Origin: Podarcis melisellensis
Taxonomy: Eukaryota
Strand: one strand, 5' to 3'
DNA: 64,000 nt
NCBI GenBank assembly: GCA_964234715.1
Contig: OZ174276.1
The position numbers were made by a program, and so were the translations under genes. Below the pieces are notes generated by a model that was not told the DNA's origin, ran no database searches, and saw nothing but the letters and a program-made list of their open reading frames with translations. The number at the start of each line of letters is the position of its first letter. The stretch's first letter is position 1. Below, piece by piece: positions 3,301-46,765 of this stretch.

Positions 3301-6300
3301 TATTTAATAAGCACACCAACTACAGTGGAGAATAAAATTGTAATACAAACAAAATATCAATCTATTGGTCATATAAAAAGACATTGTTTTCTGTTCCACC
3401 CTGCATCCATTGCCTGCAGTGCTGTTGCCTTTTTGCTGCAGCCCACACCATTAATTTCACTGGGTAGAGAATGTGAACTGGGTGGGGAAGACCCCCAGTA
3501 TACTGCAGATTGGGGAGAAATGAAGACAGTGAGTACTGATTGTATTTGCCCACCTGATCTCTGCCCGTTTGTAGATGGACCCACTAACTCTCACCCACAA
3601 CTTTTGTCAATTTTAAAAATCTAATTATTAGTCTCAAGTATACTGACGTTTTTAGTTACAGTCTACATTTTCTTTGAACTCGTAAATATGGTTGGGATAC
3701 AGAGAGCCTTGAGGGCAGTGCTATTTTTCTAGAAAAAGAGGTGCAGGAACTCACCATGAATGCCTCCCAATGGCCCCCTCCTGAGGTGCCGGAAGTAAGT
3801 TCCAGCAAGTTGCCCCTGAAAAAAGTTCTGTTTGAGGGTATGTGTAAGATCTTCAGTGTGCTAACAAGGTCTGCCTTGATTTTAATTCTGACTATTTTCT
3901 ATTCTCTGGCAGATACGACTTTGTGGTGGGCACAATGGCTATGAAAAGAAAGAAGAACCTGAAATGTTCTTGTGCATAGTTTAAGAACTTGTGGTTTGTT
4001 TCACCTGCTAACTACAGGCTCATCATTACTACTTCACCTTGGGGTCTTTGGCACAGTATTTCATAATGTCTTTCCAGTATCTATCCACCGTCTGGAACTG
4101 ACGTCCCTCCTCTGGCATCTGTTGCATGATGTCCTCTGAAGAAAATATTGGTTCTAAGTAAAGCCACTGAGCCTGTACTTTCAACCACTCATCGATAGTC
4201 TCTTGAATCCTAATCAAGCGATCTTCCCATTCCTTAAAAAACACAGTATAGTTATTTGCGTAAAACATCCATGGCATGTAAAGCAAAAGACAAAAACAAA
4301 AGGCATGAAAATAAAACAACTGATATATATACAGTGGTACCTTGGTTTTCAAACGTCTCCGTTGACTATTTCAGTTTTCGAACGCCATAAACCCGGAAAT
4401 AAATGCTTTGGTTTTTGAACGCACGACTTCCATATTGAGTTTTTAGTTTTCAAACATTTCGGAACTCAAACGGTCTTCTAGAACGGATTACGTTTGCAAA
4501 CCGGAACACTCACTTCCAAGTTTGCGGTGCTCCGGAGCCAAAACATTTGACTCACAAGTCCCTTATTCTTTAATTTTGGGGACAATCTGAGCTACTACTT
4601 CTGACCTCTTAACCATGGCTGAGAAGAAGGCCACTCTCTTCCTGCTTGCACAAAAAAATTTCCCAGACCTCACCAGCTAGTTTTAATCATGGTTAATGTT
4701 TACATCAGGGCAGACATGAACCATGGTTAATGCTTACCAGAGTTTCAGTTTCGTCTGAACTAACCCAACAAGTTTAGATGTAGGGTTATATTTTAGTTGC
4801 AGTGATTTAAACACATGAATGACACACTATTTTGCTTCTTATAATTGAATTGTAAGCTTCTTGGGGTCTCATGAGATACAAACAAATCTGAAAATAAATT
4901 TATGAATTTAAGGTTTTTTTAAAAGTCTCAAGAGAAATTGTTACCTTCCTTCAAGAGCCTCAAAAGTGTACTGTATATGTAAACACACTTTACAAAGGAA
5001 GTGAATAAAAATAAGCTGTGTAAATAAAAGTTTACAAATACCTTCATTTGTTTTTCAAAAGGCTTTATGAACGGCGATCCCCTCATTGTTTGGGTTTTTA
5101 TAATCTGGTCATCCAGAATAGTCTGAATTTCATCGACTGCGCACAGAATATTAACACCAGTCTCACGGTATAAGCTTATTTGGAAGGAAATTGAATCCCA
5201 GGTATCCATCATAGTGTGCATTGCTTTCTCTAATGAGAATTCCTACATCATAGGGAAATAAATGGTGTTATTATTATTCATTTCAAACAGATTCTTATGT
5301 ATGAAATTTCATCATATCTGATATCCTTCAAACGTTGTTTGAAGACACATCTTTTTAGAATGGACATTAAATGGCCTTCTTATAATTGGTGTTTAAATTG
5401 GGATATCAGGTAATGAAGCTACTGTCCAATAGTTTTATTGTTCAAATGCAATGGGTTTTTAAAGATATATGAAATCTTATATTAGAAGCATAAAATTGTA
5501 GAGCAGGAAGGGGCTCTGAGGATCTTCTAGTCCAAGCCTCTGCAATGCAGGAATATGCAGTTGTCCCTTGAAGTTTCCCAACCTTGTGCCTCCAGCTGTT
5601 TTTGGACTACAATTCCCATCATCCCTTGCCACTGGTCTTGCTAGTCAGGGATGATGGGAGTTGTAGTTCAAAAACATAGTATGGGACTGAACATGCAACC
5701 TTGGCATCATCAGCACCATGCTCTAACCAACCGAGCTATCCAGGCTGGGTAGTTATATTAACTCAATTGTTAAATTAACAATTTTGACAGTTTTATGGAC
5801 TGCACATCACTTTCTGAAGCAACTGTCCTAAGAAGCAGAATAGAAGTCTTTTAAATAAATAATAAACCATCTGTGCTGGGGCAGAAAAGCTTATGCTTGT
5901 ACTTACCTTGCTTGCTCCCATACTTATAGTTTCAAATTTCTCTAGGAAAGGGGTCAAGTTCTGCTTTAAAACCTTTCTTAGGGTAGTTCCAGAATCTGGA
6001 GTTAAATCATAGCCAACAATTTCTGACATCTGTTTCCAGTGACGAGCCCTTATGCCTGGGTTACAAAGGATAGTCACCAAAGGGATATTTTCCTGGTTGA
6101 GAAAAAAATATTGCAAAACAACTGTCACCGTTGTAACTAAAATCACTTGGAAATTATGTTTTATTCATCTAAAATCTTTAATCCTAGAATTGGAAAGTTG
6201 AAAGAGGCCACAGGATCATCTAGTCTAACCCCCTGCAATGCAGGAATCTTTTGCCCAATGTGGAGCTCAAATCCACAACCCTCAGATTAAGAATCTCATA

Positions 6301-9300
6301 TTCTATCGACAGAGCTATCCCTTGGATGTAGCTTAGATCTTCAAATAATTTCTAATGTATCTTATTATTCAATGTTATGGATGTGGGGGATTGCGAGCTT
6401 TCATGAAGAGGCCACATATTTTTTTCAAGTTCTCAAATATTATTTGTACAACAGACTCTAAAACATTTTCCATGTTAAGGCCATCTTATTTTTATAGATC
6501 GCCAGTTACCTTGAAATCTTTAACTTGCTCCATTACTGCAGTGCACATTGAAATAGTTGGGCTGTCCTTCTTTTCTTCCTCTACTCTCTCTTCTACTACT
6601 GCTCTCCGCTGCAGTGACTTTTTTCTCTCTAGTTCAGCTTTCTTTAGCTTTTGTTGAAAGAACCTTACTGTCTTATAAATTTCTCGAAAAAACTCATCTA
6701 CCTCCGTTTCCATACTTTCACCATTGAGATCTAAAAAAGCACCATCCATCCATCTAGCAAAAGAAAAACAACATTTTTAATGCATCATGGGTCATAAAAA
6801 GAAACCCATCACATAACATGGTGAAGTAAAATATAAACCATAAGACATCAAGAATTACAGCCTTGTTACATTAGCCAGGAATGCATACTTCTGGACAAAA
6901 AGAATTACTTAAAACAAAGAAGAATTTAATTTTAAAAAAGAAACTTGGTCACACATTTTTCTATGACAAATAAAAGCACCCTTGAAATTTCAGTCACTTT
7001 CTGTACATATAATTACCTTTTTTCAGTCCGCTGCCATTTCAATATAAAAGCAAAAAGTTTTTGGTAGGGCTCAATGTTAACTTTTAAGGTCTCCAACTCT
7101 GGGTATTCAGTCTGCTCCCAATTAAAAAGCTTTTCTTCCTTGTTAATGAAGGCAACAGTTTCGTCAGCATCTTGAAGGCGTTTCTGCATTGTTCTCATGT
7201 CGGTCACATACTGGAAACAGATTTATCTCTCTTGAGAAATACTGGGCAATTCACTTAATAATGTAGTAGTCCTTAACTTTACAAGGCAACAGACTGTATC
7301 CAATCTTCTCACCTGTGAGTGCAAGTCTCTTGTGCTAGCAGATGGGAGAGTTTTAATGTTGTGCAACAGACAAATCCAACTGCACTAGCCTTCAGTTAGA
7401 CATGTACTTGGGAGTAAGCCCTACTGAGCTCAGTAGCACTTCTAAATAAATGTGAATAGTGAATTCCCCTAGTTTAATGCAATAATCTTTTCAAGAGGTT
7501 TTGAGAGACTGACAGCTGTTGCTTGTGAGATGAGTGGTTTGATGGTGGACTACCAGCTGCTGCTGCTGAGTACCATGGAATAGTAGAATGGGACCAAATG
7601 CCCTTTCTATAAGGTGCAGGATGCAAGTAGAGGAAAGGTAACTGCTACTTCAATATCATACATGAAGATGTCTAGTGAGTGCCTGCAAGGAGAAAATATA
7701 CTAGCCCTCATGCCTCCGCCCATGCCAGTTAACATTCTTTGGTAAAGACGTTGAGTCCCTTATCTTGAAAACAGAGATGAGCGCCGCATATCACAGTCAA
7801 ATGTGACTAAACATAACAGTCCAGGGGCCCTTTACATTGCCTTTACCATTCAATGGAGCTTCAGTGTGGAATTTGGAAGTGTACTAGTGAACCACTGTTA
7901 AAGGGCTATTTTCAAGCCTAATTGTTGTGTGGAGGAGTGATCTTCATGGAGATTGCAGTACAGGGTCGGGGAGGCTGACTCTTACCTCCATAGATGCACT
8001 CTCTTGGAAGATCCCTCCCCACACATTAGGCTTGAAAAAAGTCAATAACACTTCTTTTCAAGACTAATTGCTGTTGGTGAAAGTGTGAGTGTGTGGTTAT
8101 GATTAATGTTGTTTATGCAGTTGTCATGTGTGCATGGTTGCAGGGTGTACAACAGTTTTCCTGGTTTGAGCCTAAAAAGCTTTGTGACCCCGATCCAAGC
8201 AACGAAATTCCATTATGATGTTCAATAGCAAAGTGCTAAATTTAATTAGCACTATAGCACATAGATAAAGCTTCATCGTTACACACAAAGAATGTGTATT
8301 CCTTATGCAAAGTAAAAAATCCCCTTTACACCATGTGCCACAGACCTGTTGCATGCGATCCAAATCCTGGTATTCTGTAAACTCATGCATACGACGAGTT
8401 TGCCTATCTATTTCCAGTATCAGTTTCTCACGTTTGGCCAATAAGTCACTTTCACCTTTACGTTTAGACCTTTCAATAAGCTATAAGACAGAGAAGTAGT
8501 TAGTGGCAGGCATCCATGAGGATCAAGATTTGTGAACATTATCTAGAGTCACTACACTACACGACATCAGACCAACTTCAGTTGTCCTCTAATGTTAGGC
8601 ATGACTCACAAAAGGCTTCAAAACAAAATCAGCTCTCAAGAGTATCAGTATTTCCAATCCTGCAGTCTAAGCATTGCTTTTTTCACATAGTGTAGTATCT
8701 GATATAAAAATGCATATATTTACTTCATCATTTTCATCAAAGATGGGATTAATATTCTGAGGCCATAGTAGGACAGTGGCATTCAATGACAAGCCTTCTG
8801 GGTCAAAGGTAAAAACATCTAGGAGGTAGTTCATTCGCCGTTGACTTTCCTAGAAAAGTAAATAAATAATTTATATCTATTTTTAAATTAACAGGAGCCA
8901 CCATTTCTTGCAGCCTGTCCGAAAGTTATCTTTCCTCAAAGGGGGCCTCATGCTAGGAGGCCCACAAGTAGCTTATAGCCCACCAGACAGTCTGAGTTGC
9001 TCTTAGGCCCACTGCCCACCTTCCCCTCCAGAACAGTAACTAAATACAATGGGTCGGCAAACAGGAGCTGCTGCTGCTGCTGCCCCAGAAGAGCCCACAT
9101 ATTTAAAGGGGAGAGATTCAAAAGGCAAGCTGAACCCAGTGGGATAATGCAGCTTCCTAACTGGATGCAGTGAGGCGATGCAGTCTTTACCCTGCTCCTG
9201 GATGAATGGATGGGGTTTTGTTCTCTCTTTACTGAGACAATGAAAGGGATGCTTCAGAGTTCAGTTGAGAAAGACTGGTGGGATCTTCCTTTTCTCCCTT

Positions 9301-9480: not shown

Positions 9481-12400
9481 AATGTTAAGTCCAGCAAATT
9501 TGTTTTTCCTTTGCCCAGCCATCCAAAGTCACTAGGAGTTGTGGCCAGGTAGGGGAAAGAAGCCAAACCAAAATGGTTCAGTAATTTCCTTGAGGATTAT
9601 ATGTACCTACCCCTCAGGTTGGATAGGGTTGCAGCTGTACAGCCTGAGCAGGTTTACTTGGTGAGTAAAGCTTCTTGGGTTCTACTATGCTGGCGCTTAC
9701 CGTACGCATAGTGACAAAAGGCAGAAGGAACCGCACAAAATGAAAAGCCAGTTGAAGTTAAATGGCTTTAAATCAACATCCCACCTATCATTGTGCATTT
9801 AGTTTTAAAAAACAACAACCCAACCCTAAAAGTATATGATACCTTACCTTGATCCTTTCATATAAACTGTGGATTCCTACGGTTTTAGCCTTGTCTATAT
9901 ATACTATGCTTTCCATCATTTCTTCTGTTGTCTCGGGAGGTTTTAATGCACGTACTTTGATGGTCTCAAATTCCTTGCATATCCTAAAGGAAAATATTAT
10001 GTTGATATATGCCGAAGTTTAAGAGACATAATTTGTTTTTTCATACGAACCATAAACATTATTATTTAATTTATCTAATCGGGGGGATCGGGGGGGGGAG
10101 CAATTGCATTTAAGGAAGCTCTACTGAATTCAACAGAGCTTACTCCCAGGTAAGTGTATCTGTAAATGCAGCTTTGAAGATGGGGGGAAACACACATGGC
10201 TATGACTGCCACCTAGTGCTCAAGCTTCAAGACAGAATACAGAATCCATAAGCTGTGAAAATAACTCATCTGGAAGCAATGCATCACCACTCAAAGCAGT
10301 TCATCCACCTACCACTATGGAAGGCAGCTTTGACAGAACTATTTGTCTCAGTCCCAACTTGCATTTCAATGGCCTTCAATAGCCAATCTCACTGACACAT
10401 TGGATGGCACATTTCTCCACCATCTTCCAAGGCACAGGGCTACCCACCTTAGGTCAAGTAGACCTACCTCCCTTCACAAACTTTCCCCAGCTATTTGCAT
10501 AGTCTTTTGCACCATTTAAAACTTAGTTGTTGCTGTTTTGCTTATAGGATTTTATTTATTTACAGATTTACTTATTTTCAGCACTTGCAATGCCATCTTC
10601 CAGGAATGAGCCTTCCAAGGTGGCTCACAATATATGAAAGCACAAATTATTATTTGTAAAATTACGGTCTAAATGCTTAGCAGTATTATAATCATCAGCA
10701 TTTAATATGACATAAGACAGTTAAACATATGCTAAATACAAAACCAAGAATGCTAGTAATGTGAAAATAAAAAGAGCCACAGTTAAATAAGAAAGACTAA
10801 GATATCGATTAAAAGCAGAATCAGTAGTTTAACTGAGAACTGGCACTGTCATTTCAGCAGCTGCTAACACTTCACTGCAGTGGCAAGGGTAGTTATTCAT
10901 GCTGGAAAAAAGATATGAACACTGGAAGTCTAGCACCCAATTCTATACTGTACCAGCAAAGGCTGGTCTCCTAGAAGGGGCATTGCCCTATCCAGCAACT
11001 TCAGTCTTCCTTCATCCAGCCTTTCCCCCCATCTGCCTTCTTACTTACATCTAGGCCAGTTCTCCTCCTTGGTCTTAGTGTTGTAACTGTAGAACTCACC
11101 AAGGAGAAGGATGGAGGCAAAACTAGAATTGGGAATCCCCAAGAAGGCTTGTAGCCCCGGGATTGGTGGTGGGACAATGATAAGTAGTCAGAGGGAGAAG
11201 AGCAAGAAGATTGGGAGGATATGTCAGAAGCTGAAGAGGTAACAGGGTTTAGTGAGGAGGGAGGGTCTGGGGCAGGAAGAAGTCCAGAAGCAGAAGGGGA
11301 AGGGGAAGCAAGAGAGGAGGGAAACTAAGAGGCAGAGATGAGTCAGGCTGATGAAGAATCGCAGGGATCTCCCCCTCCTGTTGTGACAAGTTCCCCCTCC
11401 CCCCTGGACTCCCAGAAGCATGAAGCAGGAGGACCAAAGGCAGGCACACTGGTATAGTCTCAGATGGCTTGGGAGAAACCTGGAGAGGAAGAGACCTGGG
11501 CAGCTGTAGGAAGGCAGGGACCTTTAGTCTCTGCAAGACCTACTGAAGAGAGTCGCTGTGCTCATTAGACCTAGCACAGAGAGGGACAAGATTTTGGGCC
11601 TACATTACAGAAAATCACTGGACATTTTGGGTAAAAGAATTGAAATTTACAAGGATATTCCTAGACAGCTCTTGGATTTGAGATCTGAATATTTGGAACT
11701 AGCAAAACTACTGAGGAGCAACTCAATCATCTTTAGGTGGGACTTCCCTCAAGGACTATCTTTTACCTTTAGAGGGAGGAAGATTAAAATTAGAACATTG
11801 GAAGATAGAGACAAATTTCTGAACCAGTACGGAGAAGACCTTCATAAAGGACTTGGATCATTGCCGGAGCCTGGAGCACCAAAGGAACCGGCACCCTTGG
11901 ATCCTGAAGACAAGGTACCACCCCCTGAAAAATAACCAGATTTAGACTTCCGGGTTAGCGCGATCTGGAAATGGCGGATTCCCTCCGAGCTGCGGAGGGA
12001 ACCGGCTTCACGGAGGACGGGTCTTGCCGCGCCGGCGACGCGGGGACCCTTAAAAACCGCAGGCGCTGAAGCCTGCGGACGGGAAGACTCGGTGGGCGCC
12101 TTAAGCACCCCCCCCGACCCTTGAAAAAGGGTACGGAGGGTAGTGTGGCGCTGAGAGTCGATCGACACCTCGGTGAAGCGAAGCCGTGAGCCACGACCGG
12201 AGAGCGCTGACTTTCTCCCTGAAAATCTGGACTGAAAGAACTAACCCGTGAGTAAACGGAATTTGGATTTAAAAAATTTTTTTCCTTGAATTTGAGACGA
12301 CAGGAGGGTGTGCTAAAAGGGAGTCCGCACCCCCCCTGATTACAGACAATTCTAAAACAAAGAACTTAAAAACTAAGGCGGGAAAGATTAGTTATACACC

Positions 12401-15400
12401 TAAAAGAAACTTCTTTCACGATTTAATAAAAGAAGAAGTGCTGTGCTGGAGAGTGAGGAGAAAATTCCTTGTGAAATCATCCCCCCCCCCCGACCAGGGA
12501 AAGTTCCGTGCTTGAGTCTGGTGAGGAAGAACAAGCTCTCAAAAGAGCTGTTAAATGGACAGATCGCAAATCGGCAAACTAATATCTCTCTGAATTAAAG
12601 GTTAAATTGAAACAAAGTGGTTGGAGACTCGATAGAAAGAAACAAAAAAAGGCTTGGACTGTTGGAAAGTTTATAAAGTAACCAGAATCCCTCTAGGGGG
12701 ACTCTAAAGCTACTACAATGGTTGCAGAAGAAATGGCTGCAGAAGAAAGACTGCAGGCAGAGATAAACAGGATGTTTTATCTTGTGGGAATACTGCAAGA
12801 GCAGAGTTTGAATATGAGCAAACAATTAATGACCTTGGATCCAGGAACAAGCAACTCTGCTGAATGCACGAAGGATATGACAGGAAAGGAATCTGCAACC
12901 GAAATAGAAATGACATCTCAAGAATTCGAGGAAAGAGAGCAAGGAGATGAGAAAGATCAATCGGAAAACATCAACAAGAAGCCTACAATGACGGAACGAA
13001 AGGCAAAAGATTCTTGGATTATTTGGATTACAACACTGCAAAAGATGCTGAGGAGGAAGGAGGGGGCCCCTATAGCATTTGGAATACAGGAACTTCAAGG
13101 ACACAAGAAACATGATTGGGGCCTCCCTGCTGACTATGAAAGACTGGTGGACTTTTGGCAGCATCTGTTTTTAAGTATCCATGTGGGAAGAAAAACCGGA
13201 GTGATGGAGGATGGGTTGTTCCGAGATTTGATGACTGACACAAGAGATTTCCAACAAAATCGACGGAGAGGAACTGAAAGTGACTTAAAAGCTTCGGACG
13301 TGAGGAATCCGGGCTAAAAAAAAAAAAAAACCATGGTTGACTTTTGTTTGAAAAGGGACTAGAACCTGGGGAGGGGGAGGGGGGGCAGAAGGGTAAGAAC
13401 GATGATAAATTTTGGGTTGTGTGAAAAGGGTTTATTCTTAAAAATGGGGAATCGGTGGAAGGGAAATTAAGCCGACCTTAGGAAAGAATCTAAATGTTTA
13501 TAAGAGTTGGGGATGAGAGTATGGGTTAAGAAGGAGAAACAAAAATTTGCTGAATGAATTAGGAAAATAGGGATGTATGAAGAGGGGGAGGGGGGAAGTC
13601 CGGGAAACAAGGTTAAAGAAAACAAGGTTTTGAGAGGATATATGTTTTTGCTTTTGTTGTATTTTTTGTGTTTTTTGTGTGTTTGTCTTTAAAAATTGTA
13701 AAACCCAATAAAAATTATATTAAAAAAAAAAATAACCAGATTTATACAGGATGTCTCTGCAACTTCTGAGTTGGAACATAAATGGCTGCAACATTCCCGA
13801 AAAAAGGAAGAAAATCTTTCATATATTAAAAAAGGAACAATTGGACATTAATTGCTTGCAAGAAACACATGTGACTAGGCTCCACAGAAAAGTTTTGGTA
13901 AATAAAAGACTTGGCCAGGAATTTATATGTTCAGACAGAGTAAAGAAGAGAGGGGTGGTGATATATGTAAAGGAGAGCCTTTCACCTAAATTATTATTTA
14001 AAGATGAACATGGCAGAATTTTGGCAGTCGAAATACAACATCAAGGAGAAAAAATTATTCTATTAGGAATCTACGCACCAAATGAAGGGAAATCGGAATT
14101 TTATAAGAAGTTGCATGAGAGCATGCTGGAGTATCTGGACTTTGACAACATCATTATGATGGGAGATATGAACGGGATTGTATCAACTAACATGGATAAG
14201 TCGCAAAGTCAAAAAGTTACTAAAGATGGCAGACTACCAAAGACCTTTTTTGAAATGACAGACAATATGGACTGGATTGACATTTGGAGAACGAGAAACC
14301 CCTTGGGAAAGGAAGGAACATTCTTCTCTGAAGCCCATCTGACTTGGACAAGAATCGACCAAATATGGATTACTAGAGGTCTGGCACCTAAGGTTAGGAA
14401 AGTGGAAATCTGCCCAAAGACCTGCTCCGACCATAATGCTTTGAAAATGGATTTGACATTGTTCCCAACCGGTTCCTTTCGATGGAAGATGAATGACAAC
14501 TTATTCAGAGATCAGGAGATTACTAAAAAGGCCCAAAAAGTTTTGAAGGACTATTTCGAAATAAATTTGAAGACAACGGTGGAAAAAAGAACAATTTGGG
14601 ACGCAAGTAAAGCTGTGATGAGAGGGTTCTTAATACAACAGAATGCTATTAAGAAAAGGAAACAAAATGAAAAGAAAGACAAGATCTTGGAGAAAATAAA
14701 AGAATTAGAGAAGAAGTTAAGAGTAAATCCGAAGTCACAGCTGATTCTGAGAGAAATTAAACTTCACCAGGCACAATATTCTAAACTGATAAATCAGGAA
14801 ATAGAATGGAAGATTAAATCAATGAAACAAAAAACGTTTGAATCGGCAAACAAATGTGGGAAACTGCTGGCTTGGCAGTTGAAGAAGAGACAAAAGTTGA
14901 ATACAGTAACAAATTTGGAAATTGAAGGAAGAAATATTCAGAACCCCGTGGAAATTAGAAAATCCTTCCAGAAATATTTCAAGAAACTATATACTCAAGG
15001 GCCGCAAAATGAGGTTGAGATTGAACAATTTTTGAAGAAAAATAGTCTTAAAAAATTTACACAAGAAAATAGACTACTCCTGAATAGCCAAATAACACGA
15101 CAAGAAATTGAACATGCCATTCAGAACATGAAACTGGGCAAATCTCCAGGGCCAGATGGCTTGACCTCCAAGTATTATAAGACAATGAGTGACTATTTGA
15201 TTCAACCTTTGATGGAGGTCAGCAATGAAATTCTGGAGGGAAAGAAGGCGCCGGAATCGTGGAAGGAAGCTTTTATCACGTTGATACCAAAATCAGAAAC
15301 TGAAAAAACACAACTTAAGAACTACCGCCCCATCTCCCTATTAAATGTGGATTACAAAATATTTGCTGATGTTTTAGCAAGCAGACTTAAAAGAGTTTTA

Positions 15401-18400
15401 AATGAAGTAATTCATAAGGACCAGGCCGGCTTTCTCCCAGGTAGACACATGTTTGCAAACACAAGAAACATTATTGACATCCTGGAACTTTTGCAAACAG
15501 ACATAAACACTAAAGCAGTGCTGATTTTTATAGACGCGGAGAAGGCCTTCGACAACATCTCTTGGAAATTCATGAAGGGAAATTTAAAAGAAATGGGAGC
15601 GGGGCGGGGTTTTGAAAATGGGATTGATGCAATATATTCAGAACAAAAAGCTAAATTGATAGTTAACAATGTGGTAACGGAAGAATTTAAAATTGAAAAA
15701 GGAACACGACAAGGCTGCCCGATTTCCCCTTTGTTATTTATTTCAGTTTTGGAGGTGCTCTTGAACTTGATCAGAGGTGACCGGTTGGTGCAGGGGATTC
15801 AGGTCGGAGCGAAACAATATAAACTTAAAGCTTTTGCAGATGACTTAGTTTTGACACTGCAGGAGCCAGAATCTAGTACGAAAAGAGTATTACAACTGAT
15901 ACATGATTTTGGTCAGGTGGCGGGATTTAAGCTAAATAAACAAAAAACGAAGGTGTTAGGGAAAAATATGACAGATACAGAGTCAGAACGGTTTCAGAGA
16001 GAAACAGAATTATCATTGGTGAAAAAGGTAAAGTACCTAGGGGTTAACATAACAGCCAAAAATCTGAGTCTATTTAAGGATAATTATGAAAAATGTTGGT
16101 CTGAAATTAAGAGAGACTTGGATAGCTGGGCAAAGCTGAAGCTTTCTTTGTTAGGCCAAATTGCTGCTATTAAGATGAATGTATTGCCAAAGATGTTGTT
16201 TCTGTTCCAAACATTGCAAATTGTGGACAAAACGGAGTGTTTCCGGAGGTGGCAGAGAGATATTTCCAAATTTGTCTGGCAGGGCAAAAAGCCCAGAATT
16301 AAGTTTAAGATATTAACAGATGCGAAGGAAAGAGGGGGCTTTGCCCTGCCAGACTTAAGGTTGTACTATGAAGCCGCAGCTTTCTGCTGGCTAAAAGATT
16401 GGCTACTCCTCGAAGACACTGATGTGTTAGACCTGGAAGGTTATAACAATGCTTTTGGTTGGCATGCATACCTGTGGTATGATAAGGCTAAGATCAATAA
16501 GGCCTTTAAGAACCATATTGTCAGAAAAGCAGTGTTTAATGTCTGGACAAAATATAAAGACTTATTGGAAAATAAAACTCCAAGGTGGCTTTCACCTTTG
16601 GAAGCTAAGGCCTGGAAAAGACCCAATATGGAAGCCTACTGGCCAAAATATTGGGAACTGTTAGAAAAAGACGGAGATAATTGGAAATTGCAGAGTATGG
16701 AGAAAATGAAGGATAAAGTGCGAGACTGGTTACACTACGCTTAGATTAAAGAAATTTTTAAAAGTGACAAGAAGTTAGGATTCCAGGTGGAGAAATCGAA
16801 GTTGGAAACAGAATTGTTAGAACCTAAGACTAAGGTACTTTCAAGAATGTATAACTTGCTGCTGAAATGGAATACACAAGACGAAATGGTTAAGTCGGCT
16901 ATGATAAAATGGGCACAGGACATTGGGCATAACATTATGTTTGAGGACTGGGAAAGGTTGTGGACCACTGGGTTGAACTTTACTGCATGTAATGCTTTGA
17001 AAGAAAATGTAATGAAAATTATATACAGATGGTACATGACCCCAGTTAAACTTGCCAAAATATACCATTTGTCTAATAATAAATGTTGGAAATGTAAAGA
17101 AAATGAAGGAACATTATTTCACCTCTGGTGGACCTGCCCTAAAGTGAAAGCCTTCTGGGAAATGATATATAATGAGTTGAAAAAGGTATTTAAGTATACC
17201 TTCACCAAGAAACCAGAGGCCTTTCTTCTGGGCATTGTCGACCAGAAGGTGTTAAAGAAAGATAGAACATTTTTCATGTATGCAACAACAGCAGCAAGGA
17301 TACTACTCGCTAAGAACTGGAAAACTCAAGATCTACCCACACTGGAAGAATGGCAGATGCAACTGATGGACTATATGCAATTGGCGGAGATGACTGGCAG
17401 AATCCGAGACCTGGGAGAAGAAAGGATTGAAGAAGATTGGAAGAAATTCAAGATTTATCTACAAAAACGTTGTGATTTAGTGGAATGTTAGGAAGGATGC
17501 TTGGTTATAAATAATTGGCCATCACTAAAATAGATCAGAATTTGATGATAAGAGAGATTAAGAGAAACAAAATTTGTAGGAGAATTTTTTTTATTGTACT
17601 TAAATAAGTGGTTATAAATTTGGAAATAAGATGATAATTTGCTTGACAAAAATTTATTAACGATGCAAGTGGGAGCGGGAGATGTGAGGAAGTCTAAGGA
17701 TGTTATGAAATTTTATAAAAACAAAGCAACACTGTTTATTATTATTGTATTTCTTTTCTAAAAACTCCAATAAATATCTATTAAAAAAAAAAAAGACCTA
17801 GCACAGAGTACTTTCCTAATCAAGAGTTAACTGAACCTACTCCGTGTGATTTACTGCGGGCTCACTTCTGGCAGAACTCATTGGTTCTGCCTGTCATTGG
17901 TTCTGGCTCAATAGCTGGTTCTTCAACAGTAGTTGCTGTTTATCAGCCTGCCTTCTGACCCACCTGCCTGCCTTCAGTCACCACTGTACTATGCAGACAT
18001 CATACAGCAGAACTTAAGGCCAGGATCGAAGTGCGCAGCAATAGTGAATTACAAGGGTTATTCTAGAGAATAATACACAAAGCGGGGTGGGATGGAATTA
18101 ACAATGTTATGCATATGGTAAAAACTATTTTAAGTGAAAGATGATTAATAACAAGATTTACTTACATTTTATTTTCTGATTTGTGATTTTCTGCTATTAC
18201 ATACAATAATTTATTTGCAAAGCTCTTTGCCTTGTCGCTCAAACCTTGCTTCAAATCTTCACAGTCTAATCGCACCATAGGGAAATGAGCAATCATTGGC
18301 AAACTCATTATTTCCTTTGCAAGACTGAAAAAGTCATCTATAAACTTCAAAAGAACATTACATTTGTTAATTTAAACTGCAGTCTTTAAAACATGTACAT

Positions 18401-40919: not shown

Positions 40920-41180
40920 TACCAACTTCCGGGTTCATCTCCCTCTACGCTCCCGGCCCCCCCCCTTTTAAGGGAGGCGTGGACACAATTTCCCAGCAGG
41001 CCTCGCGTTTCCTGCTCCGGCCCTCTCGCCTCTCGCCCCGGCTTTTCCCATCGTCCCTTGCGGGGCGGGGCAGCCAAAGTGGCTGAGTCCTGCCTGGCAA
41101 CGGAGGAGAGCCGGAGAGCGAGGCCGGGAGGCGCAGGGCAGAGCGGCGCGAATGGTGCTCGCGTGGCGGCTGCGAGTTCA
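40920..41180 (+). promoter_or_regulatory. PDE12 CpG-island promoter
   Basis: ETS/GABP-like ACTTCCGG at 40925 and GC box at 41062-41071; CpG-rich through exon 1. Confidence 0.65.
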
Positions 41181-42472
41181 TGTGGCGCCTGCTCCGCGGC
41201 ACGCTGAGAGCCCTTCCCGGCCTGAGGAGGCGGCGGCCGCCGCAGCCGCGGCCGAGCGGTTCTGGCCCCGCCAGCGGCGCGCTGCCCGCCATGGAGCGGG
41301 CCGTGGTGCGCTGCGTGCCGGCCGAGCCTAAGCTGAGCGTGTCCTTCGTGCTGGGCGACGGCAGCGCCCGGCACATGCAGCGCGACCAGGCGGAGCCGCT
41401 GGGCCGGGCGCTGGCGCGCATCGCCAACAACGCCGGCAAAGGCCACGCCAAGGCGGCCAAGAAGAGCAAGAAGGCGCGGGCCGAGGCCGAGGCTGCCGTG
41501 CCGCCGCCGCCGCCGCCCGCCGTCTGCCTCTTCTCCCAGGACGGCGAGGCCGTGGCCGAGGACGTGCCCAACGCCGAGGCCTGGCAGGACGGCGCCGTGC
41601 TGCAGATCGGGGAGGCCCGCTACCGCGTGGAGCGCAACCCGCCGGCGCTGACGGAGCTGCAGCTGCCGCGCTCGCTGCTGGCCGGCTTCCCCGTCTGCCC
41701 CAAGCTGCGCGCCGAGTTCGGCTCGCCCCGCGACTGCCTCTTCCGCTGGTACCAGGAGCAGAAGGCCGAGCCGGCCGTGGGGACGGCGGCTGCCGCTGCT
41801 GCCGGGGGGGAAGCTCCGGGCGGCTGGGTGGAAGCGCCAGGCGGCGCCGAGCGGGTCTTCACGCCCAGCAACGCGCACATCGGGCTGCGCCTCAAGCTGG
41901 TCTGCACGCCGGGCAACGGGCAGCGGCGCTACGGGCTGCCCCGCGAGGTGGAGAGCAGCGGCCCCGTGGAGGCCGGGCCGGGCGCCTGCACTTTCGACGC
42001 GCGCCACCTGTACACCAAGAAAGTGACCGGGCCGGGCCTCATCCGCACCGTCACCTACAACGTCCTGGCCGACGTCTACGCGCAGACGGAGCTCTCGCGG
42101 ACCGTGCTGTACCCGTACTGCGCGCCCTACTCGCTGGAGCTCGACTACCGGCAGAACCTGCTGAAGAAGGAGCTGGCCGGCTACAGCGCCGACATCATCT
42201 GCCTGCAGGAGGTGGACAAGTCCGTCTTCGCCGACAGCCTGGGCCCCGCGCTGGACGCCTTCGGCCTGGAGGGCCTCTTCAAGATCAAGGAGAAGCAGCA
42301 CGAGGGCCTGGCCACTTTCTACCGAAGGGACAAGTTCAGCCTCCTCAGCCAGCACGACATCGCCTTGAACCAGGCGCTCCTCGAGGATCCCCTGCACAAA
42401 GAACTGCGAGACAAGCTGGCCCCCTATCCGGAGGTGCAGGAAAAAGTGCACCAGCGGTCCTCTGTGTTGCAG
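41180..42472 (+). CDS. PDE12: PDE12 exon 1
   Basis: ORF track; CAG|GTAGAA donor. Confidence 0.95.
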
Positions 42473-44061
42473 GTAGAAGTTAAAGGGAGAGGGGGTTAGG
42501 GGGATAGGGAATGGCGGAAGTTGGCTCTAAGCTGAGTAAGGGGACCAGATCGAGAGAAAGGCAGGCTTCCTGTACTTCTCATGCAGGAATTGAATAGGTA
42601 CACTTTTTGCAAAGCTGCCTCTCCATGAAAGGTGCACCAGGCTGCTTCCCTTTACATCCCATTGCTTTGGGGCCAACTGCTCTTCCCTCAATACTCTTCC
42701 CAGGCCACACACCTCAGTGGTCCTGTTCCAGGCCCTCTTCAGGTCCTTTTGTCTTGCTGGAATGTGTCTGAATTGTAGCAATGCCTCTTGCTTGCCTTGA
42801 ATTGAGATTTCTATGTTGGGGGAGGGGATATGGAAACCTTTGATTCTTGTGTGTGTCAAGAATGTAGCCTGATGCATAATAGTAAGAGTCACATCCATTG
42901 CTCTGGCCACTTTCTTTTACTTCTTGCCCAGCCCGTCTCAGGCATTCAGCCTCCAGATGGTTGCCCATAAGAGAATAGAAAGTTCCTCACCCCTGATCTA
43001 TGGCTAGGTATGAGCAGAACATTTTTTTTAAAAACCCATCAGAAATAGACCATCAATCATGTATCCTAAATCCCCATGTTCAGGAAAATCTATTAGTGCC
43101 TCTTTTCCTCTAGAGCAGAAGTAGGGAACCTGTAGCCCTCCACATGCTGTTTGACTCCAACTCCATCCACTCAGCCAGCAGAGCCAAATTGTCAGGAATG
43201 TTGGGAGTTGTAGTTCAGCAACCTCTGGAGGGTCAGGGGCCAGAGGGTTCCCTATTCCTGCTCTACAACTTTGATGTCAAATGAAGGATTGCTAGGCTGG
43301 AGTTACAGCTAGCAATTCCAAATGGAGTTCCACTTAATACTTGTAAGCAGTGTTAGAAACTCAGATATGAAAACTAGGAACTAAACGGTACCTTAAACCT
43401 AGGTTATGGGTGCAACAACAGAATGTCTGGGTGCGCTTTTTTATAACAAGAATACAGTGCTGAAAATGAATGAACTGTGGCTAAAATATTACATTGCTTT
43501 TTCACATGGTCTAGGCCTTTCTCTGCCCACTCCCCTAATATTCTTAATAGGGTCTCTTCTCCAGTCTTCAAAGAGTAGTCAGAAGTGGGGAGGCAGAAAA
43601 AGGTCATCCTTTCCTTCCACTCTGCCGTTTTACTCTGAAATCTTAGTTGTGGTACTGCGCCCAGAGCTCGGAAACTGCTCATGCAAATGAAATTCCCTGT
43701 CGCAAAATGCGCCTAGAACAATGGGAGTTTCAAACACTACTTGTAAACAGAACATGGCTTGGAAATGGATGCCAGGATATAAAGAAAGGGGAGTAGAGTA
43801 AGCTTAGTTCAGTCCAGCTGGTTGACAGTGGGGGTGGGGTGAATGAGAGACCCACACATCATATTTATAATTTTAGGCCGGTAGCTTTATTAGCACAGAA
43901 TTGTTATAAGAAGTCAGTTTTAAAATACAGTAAGCCTGCAACTTATGCAGGAGTTATGTGCCAGGTTTCACATCTAAAGCAAAAATCATGTATACTATAG
44001 TAAAAATCCATTGGGTTCAATGGTGGATGAGGTTGCCCAAGTCATTTTTCCTGGAACCCTG

Positions 44062-44098
<37 letters not shown>

Positions 44099-46765
44099 CA
44101 TCCATCTATCTATCCACCTGCTATCTATCCATCCATCTATCGCCACATGTGTAAAGCTGAATGCACACAAGATAGATGCATGTTGCCAGCTTACAGTCCT
44201 TCCTGGCTTACCGTAATTTCCATGTTCCTTGTAGGTTTCTGTTCTTCAGTCAACAAACGATTCTTCAAGAAAGATTTGTGTTGCCAACACCCACCTATAC
44301 TGGCACCCAAAAGGTAATTCTGTTAACAATACAATGAACCATTTTAGGGTATATTTTGGGCCCTGAGGTGGGTTATAAATTCAATATATTTATGTATTTC
44401 AGTATTAATAATAATAATAATTTTTTATTTATACCCCACCCTCCCCAGCCAAGGCCGGGCTCAGAGCGGCTTACAAGCAATAATAAAAACAAGATGAATG
44501 ATTGCAATTTAAAAACAAAAATAAAATACAACATTAAAATAATGGAACATTAAAGTATTAAAATGTAGCCTCATCGCAGGAGGAGGGGGGAAAGAGAGGG
44601 AGGGAGGGAATCAAATTGGCTCCAAGCCAAAGGCCAGGCGGAACAACTCTGTCTTACAGGCGCTGCGGAAAGAAATCAGATCCTGCAGGGCCCTGGTCTC
44701 ATGAGGCAGAGCGTTCCACCAGGCTGGAGCCAGAGTTGAAAAGGCCCTGGCCCTGGTTGAAGCCAATCTAACTTCCTTAGGGCCTGGGACCACTAGGGTG
44801 TTGTTATTTATGGACCTTGAGGCTCTCCATGGGGCATACCAGGAGAGGCGGTCCCGTAGGTACGAGGGTCCTAGGCCGTGAAGGGCTTTAAAGGTCAAAA
44901 GCAGCACCTTAAATCTGACCCTGTACTCCACCGGGAGCCAGTGCAGCTTGAAAAGCACTGGGTGAATATGCTCCCATGGCAGAGACCCCGTGAGGAGCCT
45001 CGCTGCAGCATTCTGTACCCGCTGGAGTTTCTGGGACAGCTTCAAGGGCAGCCCCGCATAGAGCGAATTACAGTAGTCAAGCCTGGAGATGACCGTCGCA
45101 TGGATCACTGTGGCCAGGTCGGGGCGGGAAAGGTAAGGGACCAACTGCTTGATGCGGCGAAGGTGGAAAAATGTCGCCTTGGCTGTTGCTGTAACTTGCG
45201 CCTCCATGGAAAGGGAGGCGTCAAGGATTACACCCAAACTCTTAACGGAAGGCAATGGCACTAATTGGGCCCTCGCAAGAGAAGGGATTTGGTCCCTCAT
45301 CCCCATGCTGTCCCGACCTAGCCATAGGACCTCTGTCTTCGAAGGATTTAGTTTCAATCGGCTCCCACGAAACCATCCAGCCACATTTCTAGTCCACATT
45401 TTCATAAAAAATACAGCATGTGTTAAACAACAAACAAAATTACAATGCCATCAGTAAAAGCTGGGGGGTGGGGTAGAATCCATGTTTCAAAGACCTGTCT
45501 GAATATCATATTTTTCTGGAGACGTATAAAAGTAGGCAGGAATGATTCCTGATGTGGGGAACCGCCAGAAGTGTCCAATCAGAGGATCTCAGTGGTCACA
45601 GTACTAAGAGCCCAAGTTGTTTAGGGCTTTGTGAACTAGCACCTTGACTCTGGCCCAGTAGCAAACTGGCAACCAGTGCAACACTCTCCTGTGAACAGCT
45701 GCTGCATTAGTTGCAATTTCCAGCTCAGATGCACAGGCAGCTCCACATAAAGCAAGTCTTGGGGTTATCAAGTAGTAATACATATGCAGTGTGTGAATCC
45801 TTTCATGAGAGCTGTTGACTGAACTGACATCCTGAGTAGCCTCAATAAGGAAAATGCTTCCTAGCCTTATTGCTGGACAAATGTGTGTAATTCCAAAGGA
45901 AAAGAAATACAGTGGTACCTTGGTTCCCGAATGGCTCAGTTGTCAAACAAATCTGCTCCCGAATGCCACAAGCCCGGAAGTAAGTGTTCCGGTTTGCAAA
46001 TGTTTTTCGGAAGCCGAACGTCCGAGGCAGCTTCTGACTGAGTACAGGAAGCTCCTGCAGCCAAATGGAAGCTGCACCTTGGTTTTTGAACGGTTTCGGG
46101 AGTCGAACGGACTCCCAGAATGGATTAAGTTTGAGAACCAAGGTACTCCTGACACACCCTTGGCTTTTTTGAAATGGCTTGCATTTGTAAGTGGTGATAA
46201 AAATTCCTCGGGCGGTTTGGGGTGGATGTTGAATGACTTAAGCTGAATTTTAAGTCTTATTGGTTGAAATGACTTTAAGCCTGAAGGTTAAAAATTGGTC
46301 CTTATTTTTATTTTGTCCTTAGGTGGGAACATCCGTCTAATCCAAGCTGCAATAGCATTGTCTCATATTAGGCATGTAACACATGACATATATCCTTCTA
46401 CTCCTGTCATATTCTGTGGGGATTTTAATAGCACACCATCAAGTGGAGCATATAGTTTCATCAGTTGTGGCAGCATTGCTGAAGAGCATGAGGATTGGGG
46501 CTCAAATGGAGAAGAGCAGCGGTGCACAATGTCTTTAGCCCATCCATTCAGACTGAAAAGTGCTTGTGGAGAACCAGCTTATACTAATTACGTTGGAGGC
46601 TTTCATGGATGTTTGGACTACATTTTCATTGATGCAAATGCTTTAGAGGTTGAACAAGTAATTCCACTGCCAAGTCATGAAGAAGTAACCACTCATCAGG
46701 CCTTACCAAGCGTTTCACACCCTTCAGATCATATAGCACTAATATGTGACTTAAAGTGGAAGTAG
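41180..46765 (+). CDS. PDE12: 2',5'-phosphodiesterase 12 (EEP/CCR4-family mitochondrial deadenylase), 3 exons, 604 aa
   Basis: Exons 41180-42472, 44235-44313 and 46323-46765 join in frame. Motifs YNVLAD, CLQEVD, NTHLYWHP, GDFNS and PSDHIAL; Arg-rich N-terminal presequence. Confidence 0.96.
44062..44140. repeat. (CTAT/CCAT)n microsatellite
   Basis: Seen directly. Confidence 0.9.
44235..44313 (+). CDS. PDE12: PDE12 exon 2 (VSVLQSTNDSSRKICVANTHLYWHPK)
   Basis: gtag| acceptor, G|GTAATT donor. Confidence 0.93.
44404..45385 (-). mobile_element. L2-clade LINE 3' fragment in PDE12 intron 2
   Basis: [31 protein letters not shown]; (ATT)n-type tail. Confidence 0.85.
45910..46150. mobile_element. Tc1/mariner-type MITE
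   Basis: CAGTGGTACC TIR; same subfamily as the 49891 and 56642 copies. Confidence 0.8.
46323..46765 (+). CDS. PDE12: PDE12 exon 3
   Basis: cttag| acceptor; ends ICDLKWK*. Confidence 0.95.

Follow-up and report, generated by a model that had tools for sequence, protein, structure and literature searches.

A likely L1-built, non-autonomous retroposon family of lacertid lizards encoding a small protein without detectable ORF1p homology

A 1783-bp insert in DNA of Podarcis melisellensis (positions 11945-13727 of a 64-kb stretch of contig OZ174276.1) is best explained as a full-length and still young member of a family of non-autonomous retroposons in lacertid lizards, which was built from parts of the long interspersed element (LINE) L1 and carries a single open reading frame (ORF). 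We consider this explanation likely as a whole, and very likely in the part that concerns the identity of the element and its mobilisation. The specific role that we propose for the encoded protein is tentative, and our confidence in it falls somewhat short of even because the protein is acidic and has no confident fold, and because no RNA run holding the element was found. Throughout, "the window" means the whole 64-kb stretch, and coordinates refer to it unless another contig is named; all features of the insert lie on the plus strand.

A first-pass annotation made from the letters alone had described a 17-bp target-site duplication (TSD) around 1783 bp, characteristic opening motifs in a CpG-rich leader, an intact 199-aa ORF with a strong start context, a G-rich and then T-rich 3' region followed by AATAAA and poly(A), and the lack of reverse transcriptase and endonuclease, and we recovered every one of these features. 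The window contains two exact instances of the 17-mer AAAAATAACCAGATTTA and no more (11928-11944 and 13728-13744), and 100 shuffled controls contained no match. Its left copy includes the TAA stop codon of ORF1 of a resident L1, such that the insert between the two copies occupies the spacer between the ORF1 stop and the ORF2 ATG of that host element. In contigs from four public sequencing runs of three coded organisms, paralogous L1 copies display the end of ORF1 joined directly to a single 17-mer and then to ORF2, which is the empty site; the 1783 bp are therefore an insertion and the 17-mer was duplicated by that very insertion. The insert ends in an A-run that starts at 13722 and measures 6-11 nt, since five of its eleven A's belong to the TSD; with only six A's outside the duplication the tail is short, and the tail proper may be just these 6 nt. 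Together with poly(A) and a polyadenylation signal, the insertion has a T-rich nick site on the bottom strand, TTATTTTT/CA, which differs from the canonical TTTT/AA. Pfam detects neither a reverse transcriptase nor an endonuclease in the insert. An element that lacks the enzymes and yet has a TSD and poly(A) is what L1 ORF2p produces by target-primed reverse transcription.

The layout of the insert is that of a messenger RNA with an L1-like beginning and end. It opens with GACTTCCGG (11945-11953), with an ETS-like ACTTCCGG at the very start and a YY1-like AAATGGCGG at 11969-11977, 16 nt beyond GACTTCCGG. Both motifs lie in the head of the 5' untranslated region (UTR), a CpG island of L1 type with hairpin-forming, GC-rich blocks at 11945-12250: over these first 306 nt the GC content is 0.63 and the observed to expected ratio of CpG is 1.10, as against about 0.5 in the rest of the element and 0.14 in unique flanking DNA. 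Judged by its motifs, the head is presumably transcribed by RNA polymerase II (Pol II) and bound by YY1 and ETS factors. Very many contigs in all four runs fall on 11970-12076, and the same is true of the start of ORF2, in keeping with an L1 origin of the head. With the remainder of the 5' UTR at 12251-12717 the whole region is 773 nt long, and our alignments A2 and A4 reveal conserved blocks in it, namely ACCCGTGAGTA (12244-12254), GGAGTCCGCACCCCC, a weakened TTGACAGCTGTCAA palindrome and, just before the ATG, CCCTCTAGGGGG. These blocks recur in distant members of the family (L008 and L011, described below) and in part in the 5' UTR of an L1 in P. lilfordi (L007:5340-6290). The ORF, at 12718-13317 with its stop codon included, is the only one of the insert and starts in an ACAATGG-type context with A at −3 and G at +4. 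The proximal 3' UTR (13318-13546) has an A-run directly after the stop, a conserved block GGGACTAGAACCTGGGGAGGGGG and a GGGAATCGGTGGAAGGGAA block, and these blocks are kept in the copies on contigs L001, L004, L005, L007, L008 and L011. Within the L1-like 3' terminus (13547-13727) lie a G-rich block, GGGGGAGGGGGGAAGTCCGGG, and a T-rich tract, together with AATAAA (13707-13712) and the A-tail; the 3' region counts two G-rich blocks in all.

Several further observations concern these untranslated regions. The splice-donor-like ACCCGTGAGTA is invariant in the window copy, the P. lilfordi copy, L008 and an internally deleted L1 (alignment A4). Three GC-rich hairpins are predicted in the head (11945-12125) in all four sequences compared, as exemplified by CCGCAGGC-loop-GCCTGCGG at about 12063-12084, which is CACAGGC...GCCTGTG in L008. 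Double changes occur in six of the 44 predicted pairs, with a covariation term near zero in what are four sequences only. The A-run after the stop (13316-13331) is 10 nt longer in the window copy than in other copies, and the window copy also lacks 41 nt that other copies have at 13519/13520. A scan of the whole insert against Rfam gave no match at E <= 1 apart from one chance match. We also considered a short interspersed element or other small-RNA-derived retroposon with a tRNA, 7SL or 5S head and transcription by RNA polymerase III, and rejected it on the missing Rfam match and on a head that is an L1 5' UTR.

The origin of the two ends became apparent from the P. lilfordi contig L007 (OX395132.1), which carries at 5340-7485 a second element that starts GACTTCCGGGG...AATGGCAGAATTC, with the same head as the family, and that aligns with the family 5' UTR over about 450 nt plus later blocks. 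In this element the 5' UTR is followed by ~150 N-terminal codons of ORF1, which continue in frame into the final ~110 codons of ORF2; the resulting ORF measures 268 aa from the first start codon or 262 aa from the ATG, and a 3' UTR and an A-tail come after it. The last 110 residues of this ORF match the end of ORF2 of the host L1 at 70% identity (E 2.5e-53), and by its sequence the element is an L1 with an internal deletion. A P. lilfordi copy of the family (L007:8931-10725) begins only 1.4 kb further downstream. By blastn, the 3' UTR of the deleted L1 (L007:7080-7485) is colinear with the final ~180 nt of the family, at E values down to 5e-7, and a weaker blastn match connects the 3' terminus of the family with the tail of the host L1. 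Since the family has its head and its 3' terminus in common with this deleted L1, both of its ends are derived from L1; the assignment of the head rests on this internally deleted L1, the two other L1 contigs being of other lineages and stopping short of their 5' ends.

The insert belongs to a dispersed family and is not a single-copy sequence. The full-length P. lilfordi copy at L007:8931-10725 starts ACTTCCGGGTT...AATGGCGGATTC with the same first bases and closes with the signal and A-tail also seen in the window. Its TSD is a different one, 14 bp long with one mismatch, which falls, as does the perfect 17-bp TSD in the window, within the roughly 7-20 bp that are usual for retroposons made by target-primed reverse transcription. 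On L001 and L004, short contigs from other samples, the element ends at the same tail and gives way to unrelated flanks, as expected of dispersed copies with common ends. A search with the ORF returned three proteins of 188-196 aa with 54-74% identity from short Logan contigs, an exhaustive profile search among 1.84 billion representatives returned ten clusters, all of 129-215 aa and none within a longer protein, and a further search with the family profile added three more members. The family thus far amounts to about 20 related proteins of 129-215 aa, none of which is fused to a reverse transcriptase, and every member seen has the ORF followed by a 3' UTR and no ORF2. Annotated proteomes held one match only, a hypothetical protein fragment of P. 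lilfordi. In the distant members L008 and L011, protein identity to the window ORF is down to 26-37%, yet the layout is unchanged: these members too have the TTGACAGCTGTCAA palindrome, CCCTCTAGAGGGG before the ATG and, following the stop codon, a GGGAC..GAACC.GGGGAGGG block, as well as a second G-rich block, a T-rich tract and an AATAAA-type end.

Evidence for several copies per genome came from within single sequencing runs. Near-identical contigs on the element showed differences at 2 positions in 610 nt or at 1-2 positions in 331-407 nt, and diverged contigs on the same stretch differed at 64 positions in 421 nt; a genome therefore contains more than one copy and more than one subfamily. 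The word depth of the element contigs is several times that of a flank contig, a summed contig depth that does not equal a copy number.

Selection has acted on the ORF in more than one lineage. Comparing the window ORF with three homologues, and these homologues with one another, by the method of Nei and Gojobori gave dN/dS values of 0.25-0.35 at dS 0.48-0.88, far from the value near 1 that would speak against a functional protein, and we conclude from these comparisons that the ORF is under purifying selection. Constraint is strongest in its N-terminal and C-terminal thirds. The untranslated regions are also constrained, evolving more slowly than synonymous sites: between the window copy and L001 the 3' UTR diverges by K = 0.15 at a dS of 0.475, and between the window copy and L002 the 5' UTR diverges by K = 0.26 at a dS of 0.52. 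Among the non-coding parts it is the head that is best preserved when distant members are compared.

The protein begins with a heptad coiled coil (residues ~5-41); a variable linker of acidic character comes next, then a helical region that contains Trp, and finally a basic tail. An alignment of 13 sequences shows that the first ~30 and the last ~35 residues are conserved and that the middle is variable and rich in indels. The first 15 nt of the window ORF are a tandem duplicate of the next 15 (12718-12747) and add five N-terminal residues that no relative has. Conservation of the protein is highest at its very end: every intact member terminates in A-S-D-x-x-x-P-G with the stop codon immediately thereafter (13291-13317 in the window). 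A PG-stop ending of this kind brings to mind a C-terminal glycine signal or a pausing of termination. A ribosome-skipping peptide of the 2A type (D(V/I)ExNPG followed by P) was considered for the same residues and rejected, since the spacing is one residue short, the N varies (N, D or S) and there is no P codon.

No search revealed a likeness of this protein to L1 ORF1p, in agreement with the first-pass annotation, which had seen none of the ORF1p motifs in it. Pfam produced only a chance match to GH97_C (E 0.12) and no Transposase_22, and a profile search of PDB produced a single match with E = 1. With hhalign, the 13-sequence family profile had a probability below 1% against each of three lizard ORF1 sequences, namely the ORF1p of two lizard L1 lineages and the N-terminal part of ORF1 from the head-sharing L1. 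When six elements were compared in any frame with L1 proteins by blastx, the best E value was 0.07. Features from the ESM Atlas matched gag- or coat-like rows only, at 0.78-0.82, a level that shuffled proteins reach in one third of cases.

The N-terminus is the part of the protein for which modelling is informative. Hydrophobic residues recur every 3-4 positions from residue 12 to residue 40, and the helix at residues 2-39 is the only part of the AlphaFold2 model that reaches a pLDDT (predicted local confidence) of about 70-75. A trimer model of residues 1-50 scored 0.53, as against 0.02 for the best control, with a run-to-run contact agreement of at least 78%, a partner pLDDT of at least 73 and contacts on the a/d positions. 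In calibration with microbial proteins the score mark was reached by 21 of 30 self-pairing chains and by none of 23 single-chain structures; with eukaryotic proteins it was reached by 17 of 29 self-pairs (7 of 16 in animals) and by none of 30 single chains, and only one of the seven eukaryotic self-pairs that had no older solved relative attained it. The score was calibrated on two-copy jobs, and the job with residues 1-50 used three copies. The model supports self-association of the N-terminus as a coiled coil.

The following sequence of events would account for these findings. The CpG-island head taken from L1, with its ETS-like and YY1-like motifs, would serve as an internal Pol II promoter, and the transcript would be polyadenylated at the element's own signal. 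As the element has neither reverse transcriptase nor endonuclease, L1 ORF2p would have to be provided in trans and to copy it by target-primed reverse transcription, and in the present case the copy would have landed in the spacer between ORF1 and ORF2 of a dead L1. The annotation mentioned above had likewise called the element L1-dependent, and the TSD, the poly(A) and the missing enzymes bear this out; with its L1-derived ends, the architecture is similar to that of HAL1 and is not independent of L1. The ORF of a selfish element stays intact only if its protein favours the RNA that encodes it, and the protein therefore probably acts in cis. Its coiled coil may mediate oligomerisation, its basic C-terminal tail might be what keeps it with the transcript from which it was made, and the resulting particle could compete with L1 RNA for ORF2p. 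In this capacity it would be a functional stand-in for ORF1p, unrelated to it by descent. We would go further only as speculation: the protein might be the independently invented "gag" of a LINE parasite, a small coiled-coil protein whose translation from its own RNA is needed to capture ORF2p and whose C-terminal ASD-x-x-x-PG-stop is a functional end motif, an idea that we consider less likely than not. Such an end could pause termination or be recognised as a glycine end, and would thereby hold protein, ribosome and RNA together.

A number of points weigh against this interpretation. The ORF of the P. lilfordi full-length copy is frameshifted, and the homologues used in the dN/dS comparisons come from gene calls and are biased toward intact ORFs, though this bias alone cannot yield a threefold deficit of non-synonymous change. 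The overall pLDDT of the AlphaFold2 models is low (48.8 with 4 sequences and 46.9 with 13), and there is no confident fold. The protein is acidic overall, with a pI of 5.2 (4.5-6.4 in most members), and only its last ~35 residues are basic; L1 ORF1p, by comparison, is basic, and a direct coating of RNA by the acidic protein is therefore not obvious. One subgroup of family members is basic throughout. No RNA run holding the element was found, and transcription and translation are predictions only. A search of the literature found no description of such an element in squamates, and the family may already carry a name in Dfam or Repbase; the earlier suggestion of an undescribed family with a novel protein accordingly stands as far as the missing likeness to ORF1p and the literature go, and less firmly with respect to naming. 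Finally, the insertion may have occurred into this L1 copy or into its source element, both of which are compatible with the data.

This last point leads to an alternative order of events in which the insert entered the source L1 and the composite was then copied into the present locus as one 5'-truncated unit. In favour of this order, the host L1 and the insert both look young and both have perfect TSDs. Against it, transcription of the composite would have had to continue past the AATAAA of the insert, many L1 paralogs have no insert, and among the contigs listed none bridges either junction (a weak argument), and we regard this order as improbable. Similarly low, in our estimation, is the probability that the ORF is a cargo gene, captured elsewhere and kept for another role such as blunting host silencing or acting on L1 in trans. 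An orphan protein that has no relatives outside the family among the 1.84 billion representatives, that is acidic and for the most part modelled at low confidence or disordered, and whose invariant PG-stop C-terminus resembles a short linear motif, might well be such cargo. A trans-acting factor would nevertheless not preserve the ORF lineage by lineage, and the diverged subfamilies all keep it at a dN/dS of about 0.3; nor was a donor gene found.

The alternative that comes closest to the proposed L1-built family is a true HAL1, in which the ORF would be a much-diverged or truncated L1 ORF1p that kept the coiled coil and whose RNA-recognition motif (RRM) and C-terminal domain (CTD) were lost or have become unrecognisable. 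The ORF does occupy the ORF1 position behind an L1 5' UTR, its product begins with a coiled coil as ORF1p does, and HAL1 elements have arisen several times independently in mammals (PMC5753468). On the other hand, the family profile remains below 1% even against the ORF1 N-part of the very L1 that shares its head, neither the blastx comparison nor the Pfam search (Transposase_22) recovered a link to L1 proteins, and an acidic protein of 199 aa is too short for an RRM plus a CTD. The UTRs of L1 origin and the lack of ORF2 are thus as in HAL1, and the single ORF is not L1 ORF1p; a true HAL1 is unlikely, if marginally less so than cargo. That the insert is a processed retrocopy of an ordinary host mRNA, and not a member of a transposable-element family, is by contrast highly unlikely. 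The TSD-flanked succession of 5' UTR, ORF, 3' UTR, AATAAA and A-tail is indeed that of an mRNA, but the head and 3' terminus are common to L1, the copies in two genomes share a starting base that is the L1 start, diverged subfamilies occur within one run and annotated proteomes contain just the one hypothetical fragment. A processed pseudogene or retrogene would have an intron-bearing parent and UTRs unrelated to transposable elements, and no parent gene was found in data that do not cover the whole genome.

The host L1 that received the insert extends from 11582 to 17793 (plus strand) according to ORF and Pfam evidence and is 5'-truncated inside ORF1. What is left of ORF1, its C-terminal part, runs to 11935; ORF2 begins at 13751 and contains Exo_endo_phos and RVT_1 domains. 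The element is flanked by its own perfect 15-bp TSD, AGACCTAGCACAGAG, at 11567-11581 and 17794-17808. Its ORF2 is 90% identical to reverse transcriptase proteins of Podarcis muralis and has one in-frame stop codon at 16742-16744, after which the same frame continues to 17491. On the preferred reading, this L1 was already dead at the time the insert landed. That the insert might supply ORF2 with a new promoter and a first ORF is unlikely to have any functional consequence, given the AATAAA in the insert and the broken ORF2. Neither a second copy of the insert (by blastn and tblastn) nor a further L1 was found in the 64-kb window.

Elsewhere in the window, a G/A-rich stretch just upstream of the host L1 (11114-11434) is hit by thousands of contigs in all four runs, many of which share a loose end at 11159; it is therefore another abundant repeat, with a copy that begins at this point. 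Two exons of a host gene that resembles 2',5'-phosphodiesterase 12 lie further downstream on the plus strand, one at 41180-42499 (PDE12-like_N, E 7e-44, and the start of Exo_endo_phos) and the other at 46295-46765, which carries the end of Exo_endo_phos.

To our knowledge, HAL1, which retains ORF1p, is almost the only known kind of non-autonomous L1 partner that codes for a protein. The lizard family thus poses a testable question, namely what a first-cistron protein must do for its RNA to win ORF2p, and it lends itself naturally to a comparison with ORF1p, in a group of vertebrates that has many active L1 lineages. If the reading of the protein as an independent "gag" were true, non-LTR (long terminal repeat) parasites would be able to replace ORF1p by a different solution. 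There is also a practical side for annotators, in that the ORF of this recurring ~1.8-kb unit will be labelled "hypothetical protein" by gene predictors in lacertids, as has happened in P. lilfordi.

Among known systems the element is of a familiar kind, an L1-derived, ORF-bearing, non-autonomous element; what is unusual is that an orphan protein other than ORF1p is kept in several subfamilies, and that this is so in lizards. Composites mobilised by L1, such as SVA and LAVA, resemble it in being poly(A)-ended, TSD-flanked and assembled from pieces of other elements and, probably, in being Pol II-type and mobilised in trans; they are non-coding, whereas the lizard family has a conserved ORF and takes both of its termini from L1. 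Processed pseudogenes and retrogenes share the insertion chemistry and the mRNA-like layout, and the lizard family differs from them in being self-propagating, in having ends of L1 origin together with a fixed 5' start, and in comprising several long-lived subfamilies. L1 ORF1p itself, with its coiled coil, RRM and CTD (Transposase_22), is paralleled by the first-cistron position, the purifying selection and a heptad coiled coil at the N-terminus for which a trimer model has support, and is set apart by the missing RRM and CTD, the lack of any Pfam or profile match and a pI of about 5 in place of a strongly basic one. The nearest counterpart is HAL1, a non-autonomous L1 derivative that keeps the L1 UTRs and a single first ORF, has no ORF2 and uses ORF2p in trans (PMC5753468). 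The lizard element has the same L1-derived UTRs, single first ORF and missing ORF2, and probably the same dependence on ORF2p in trans; in contrast to HAL1, which encodes ORF1p, its ORF is acidic, about half as long and devoid of detectable ORF1p homology, and its hosts are lacertids. In this combination it looks like a so far undescribed way of building an L1 parasite.

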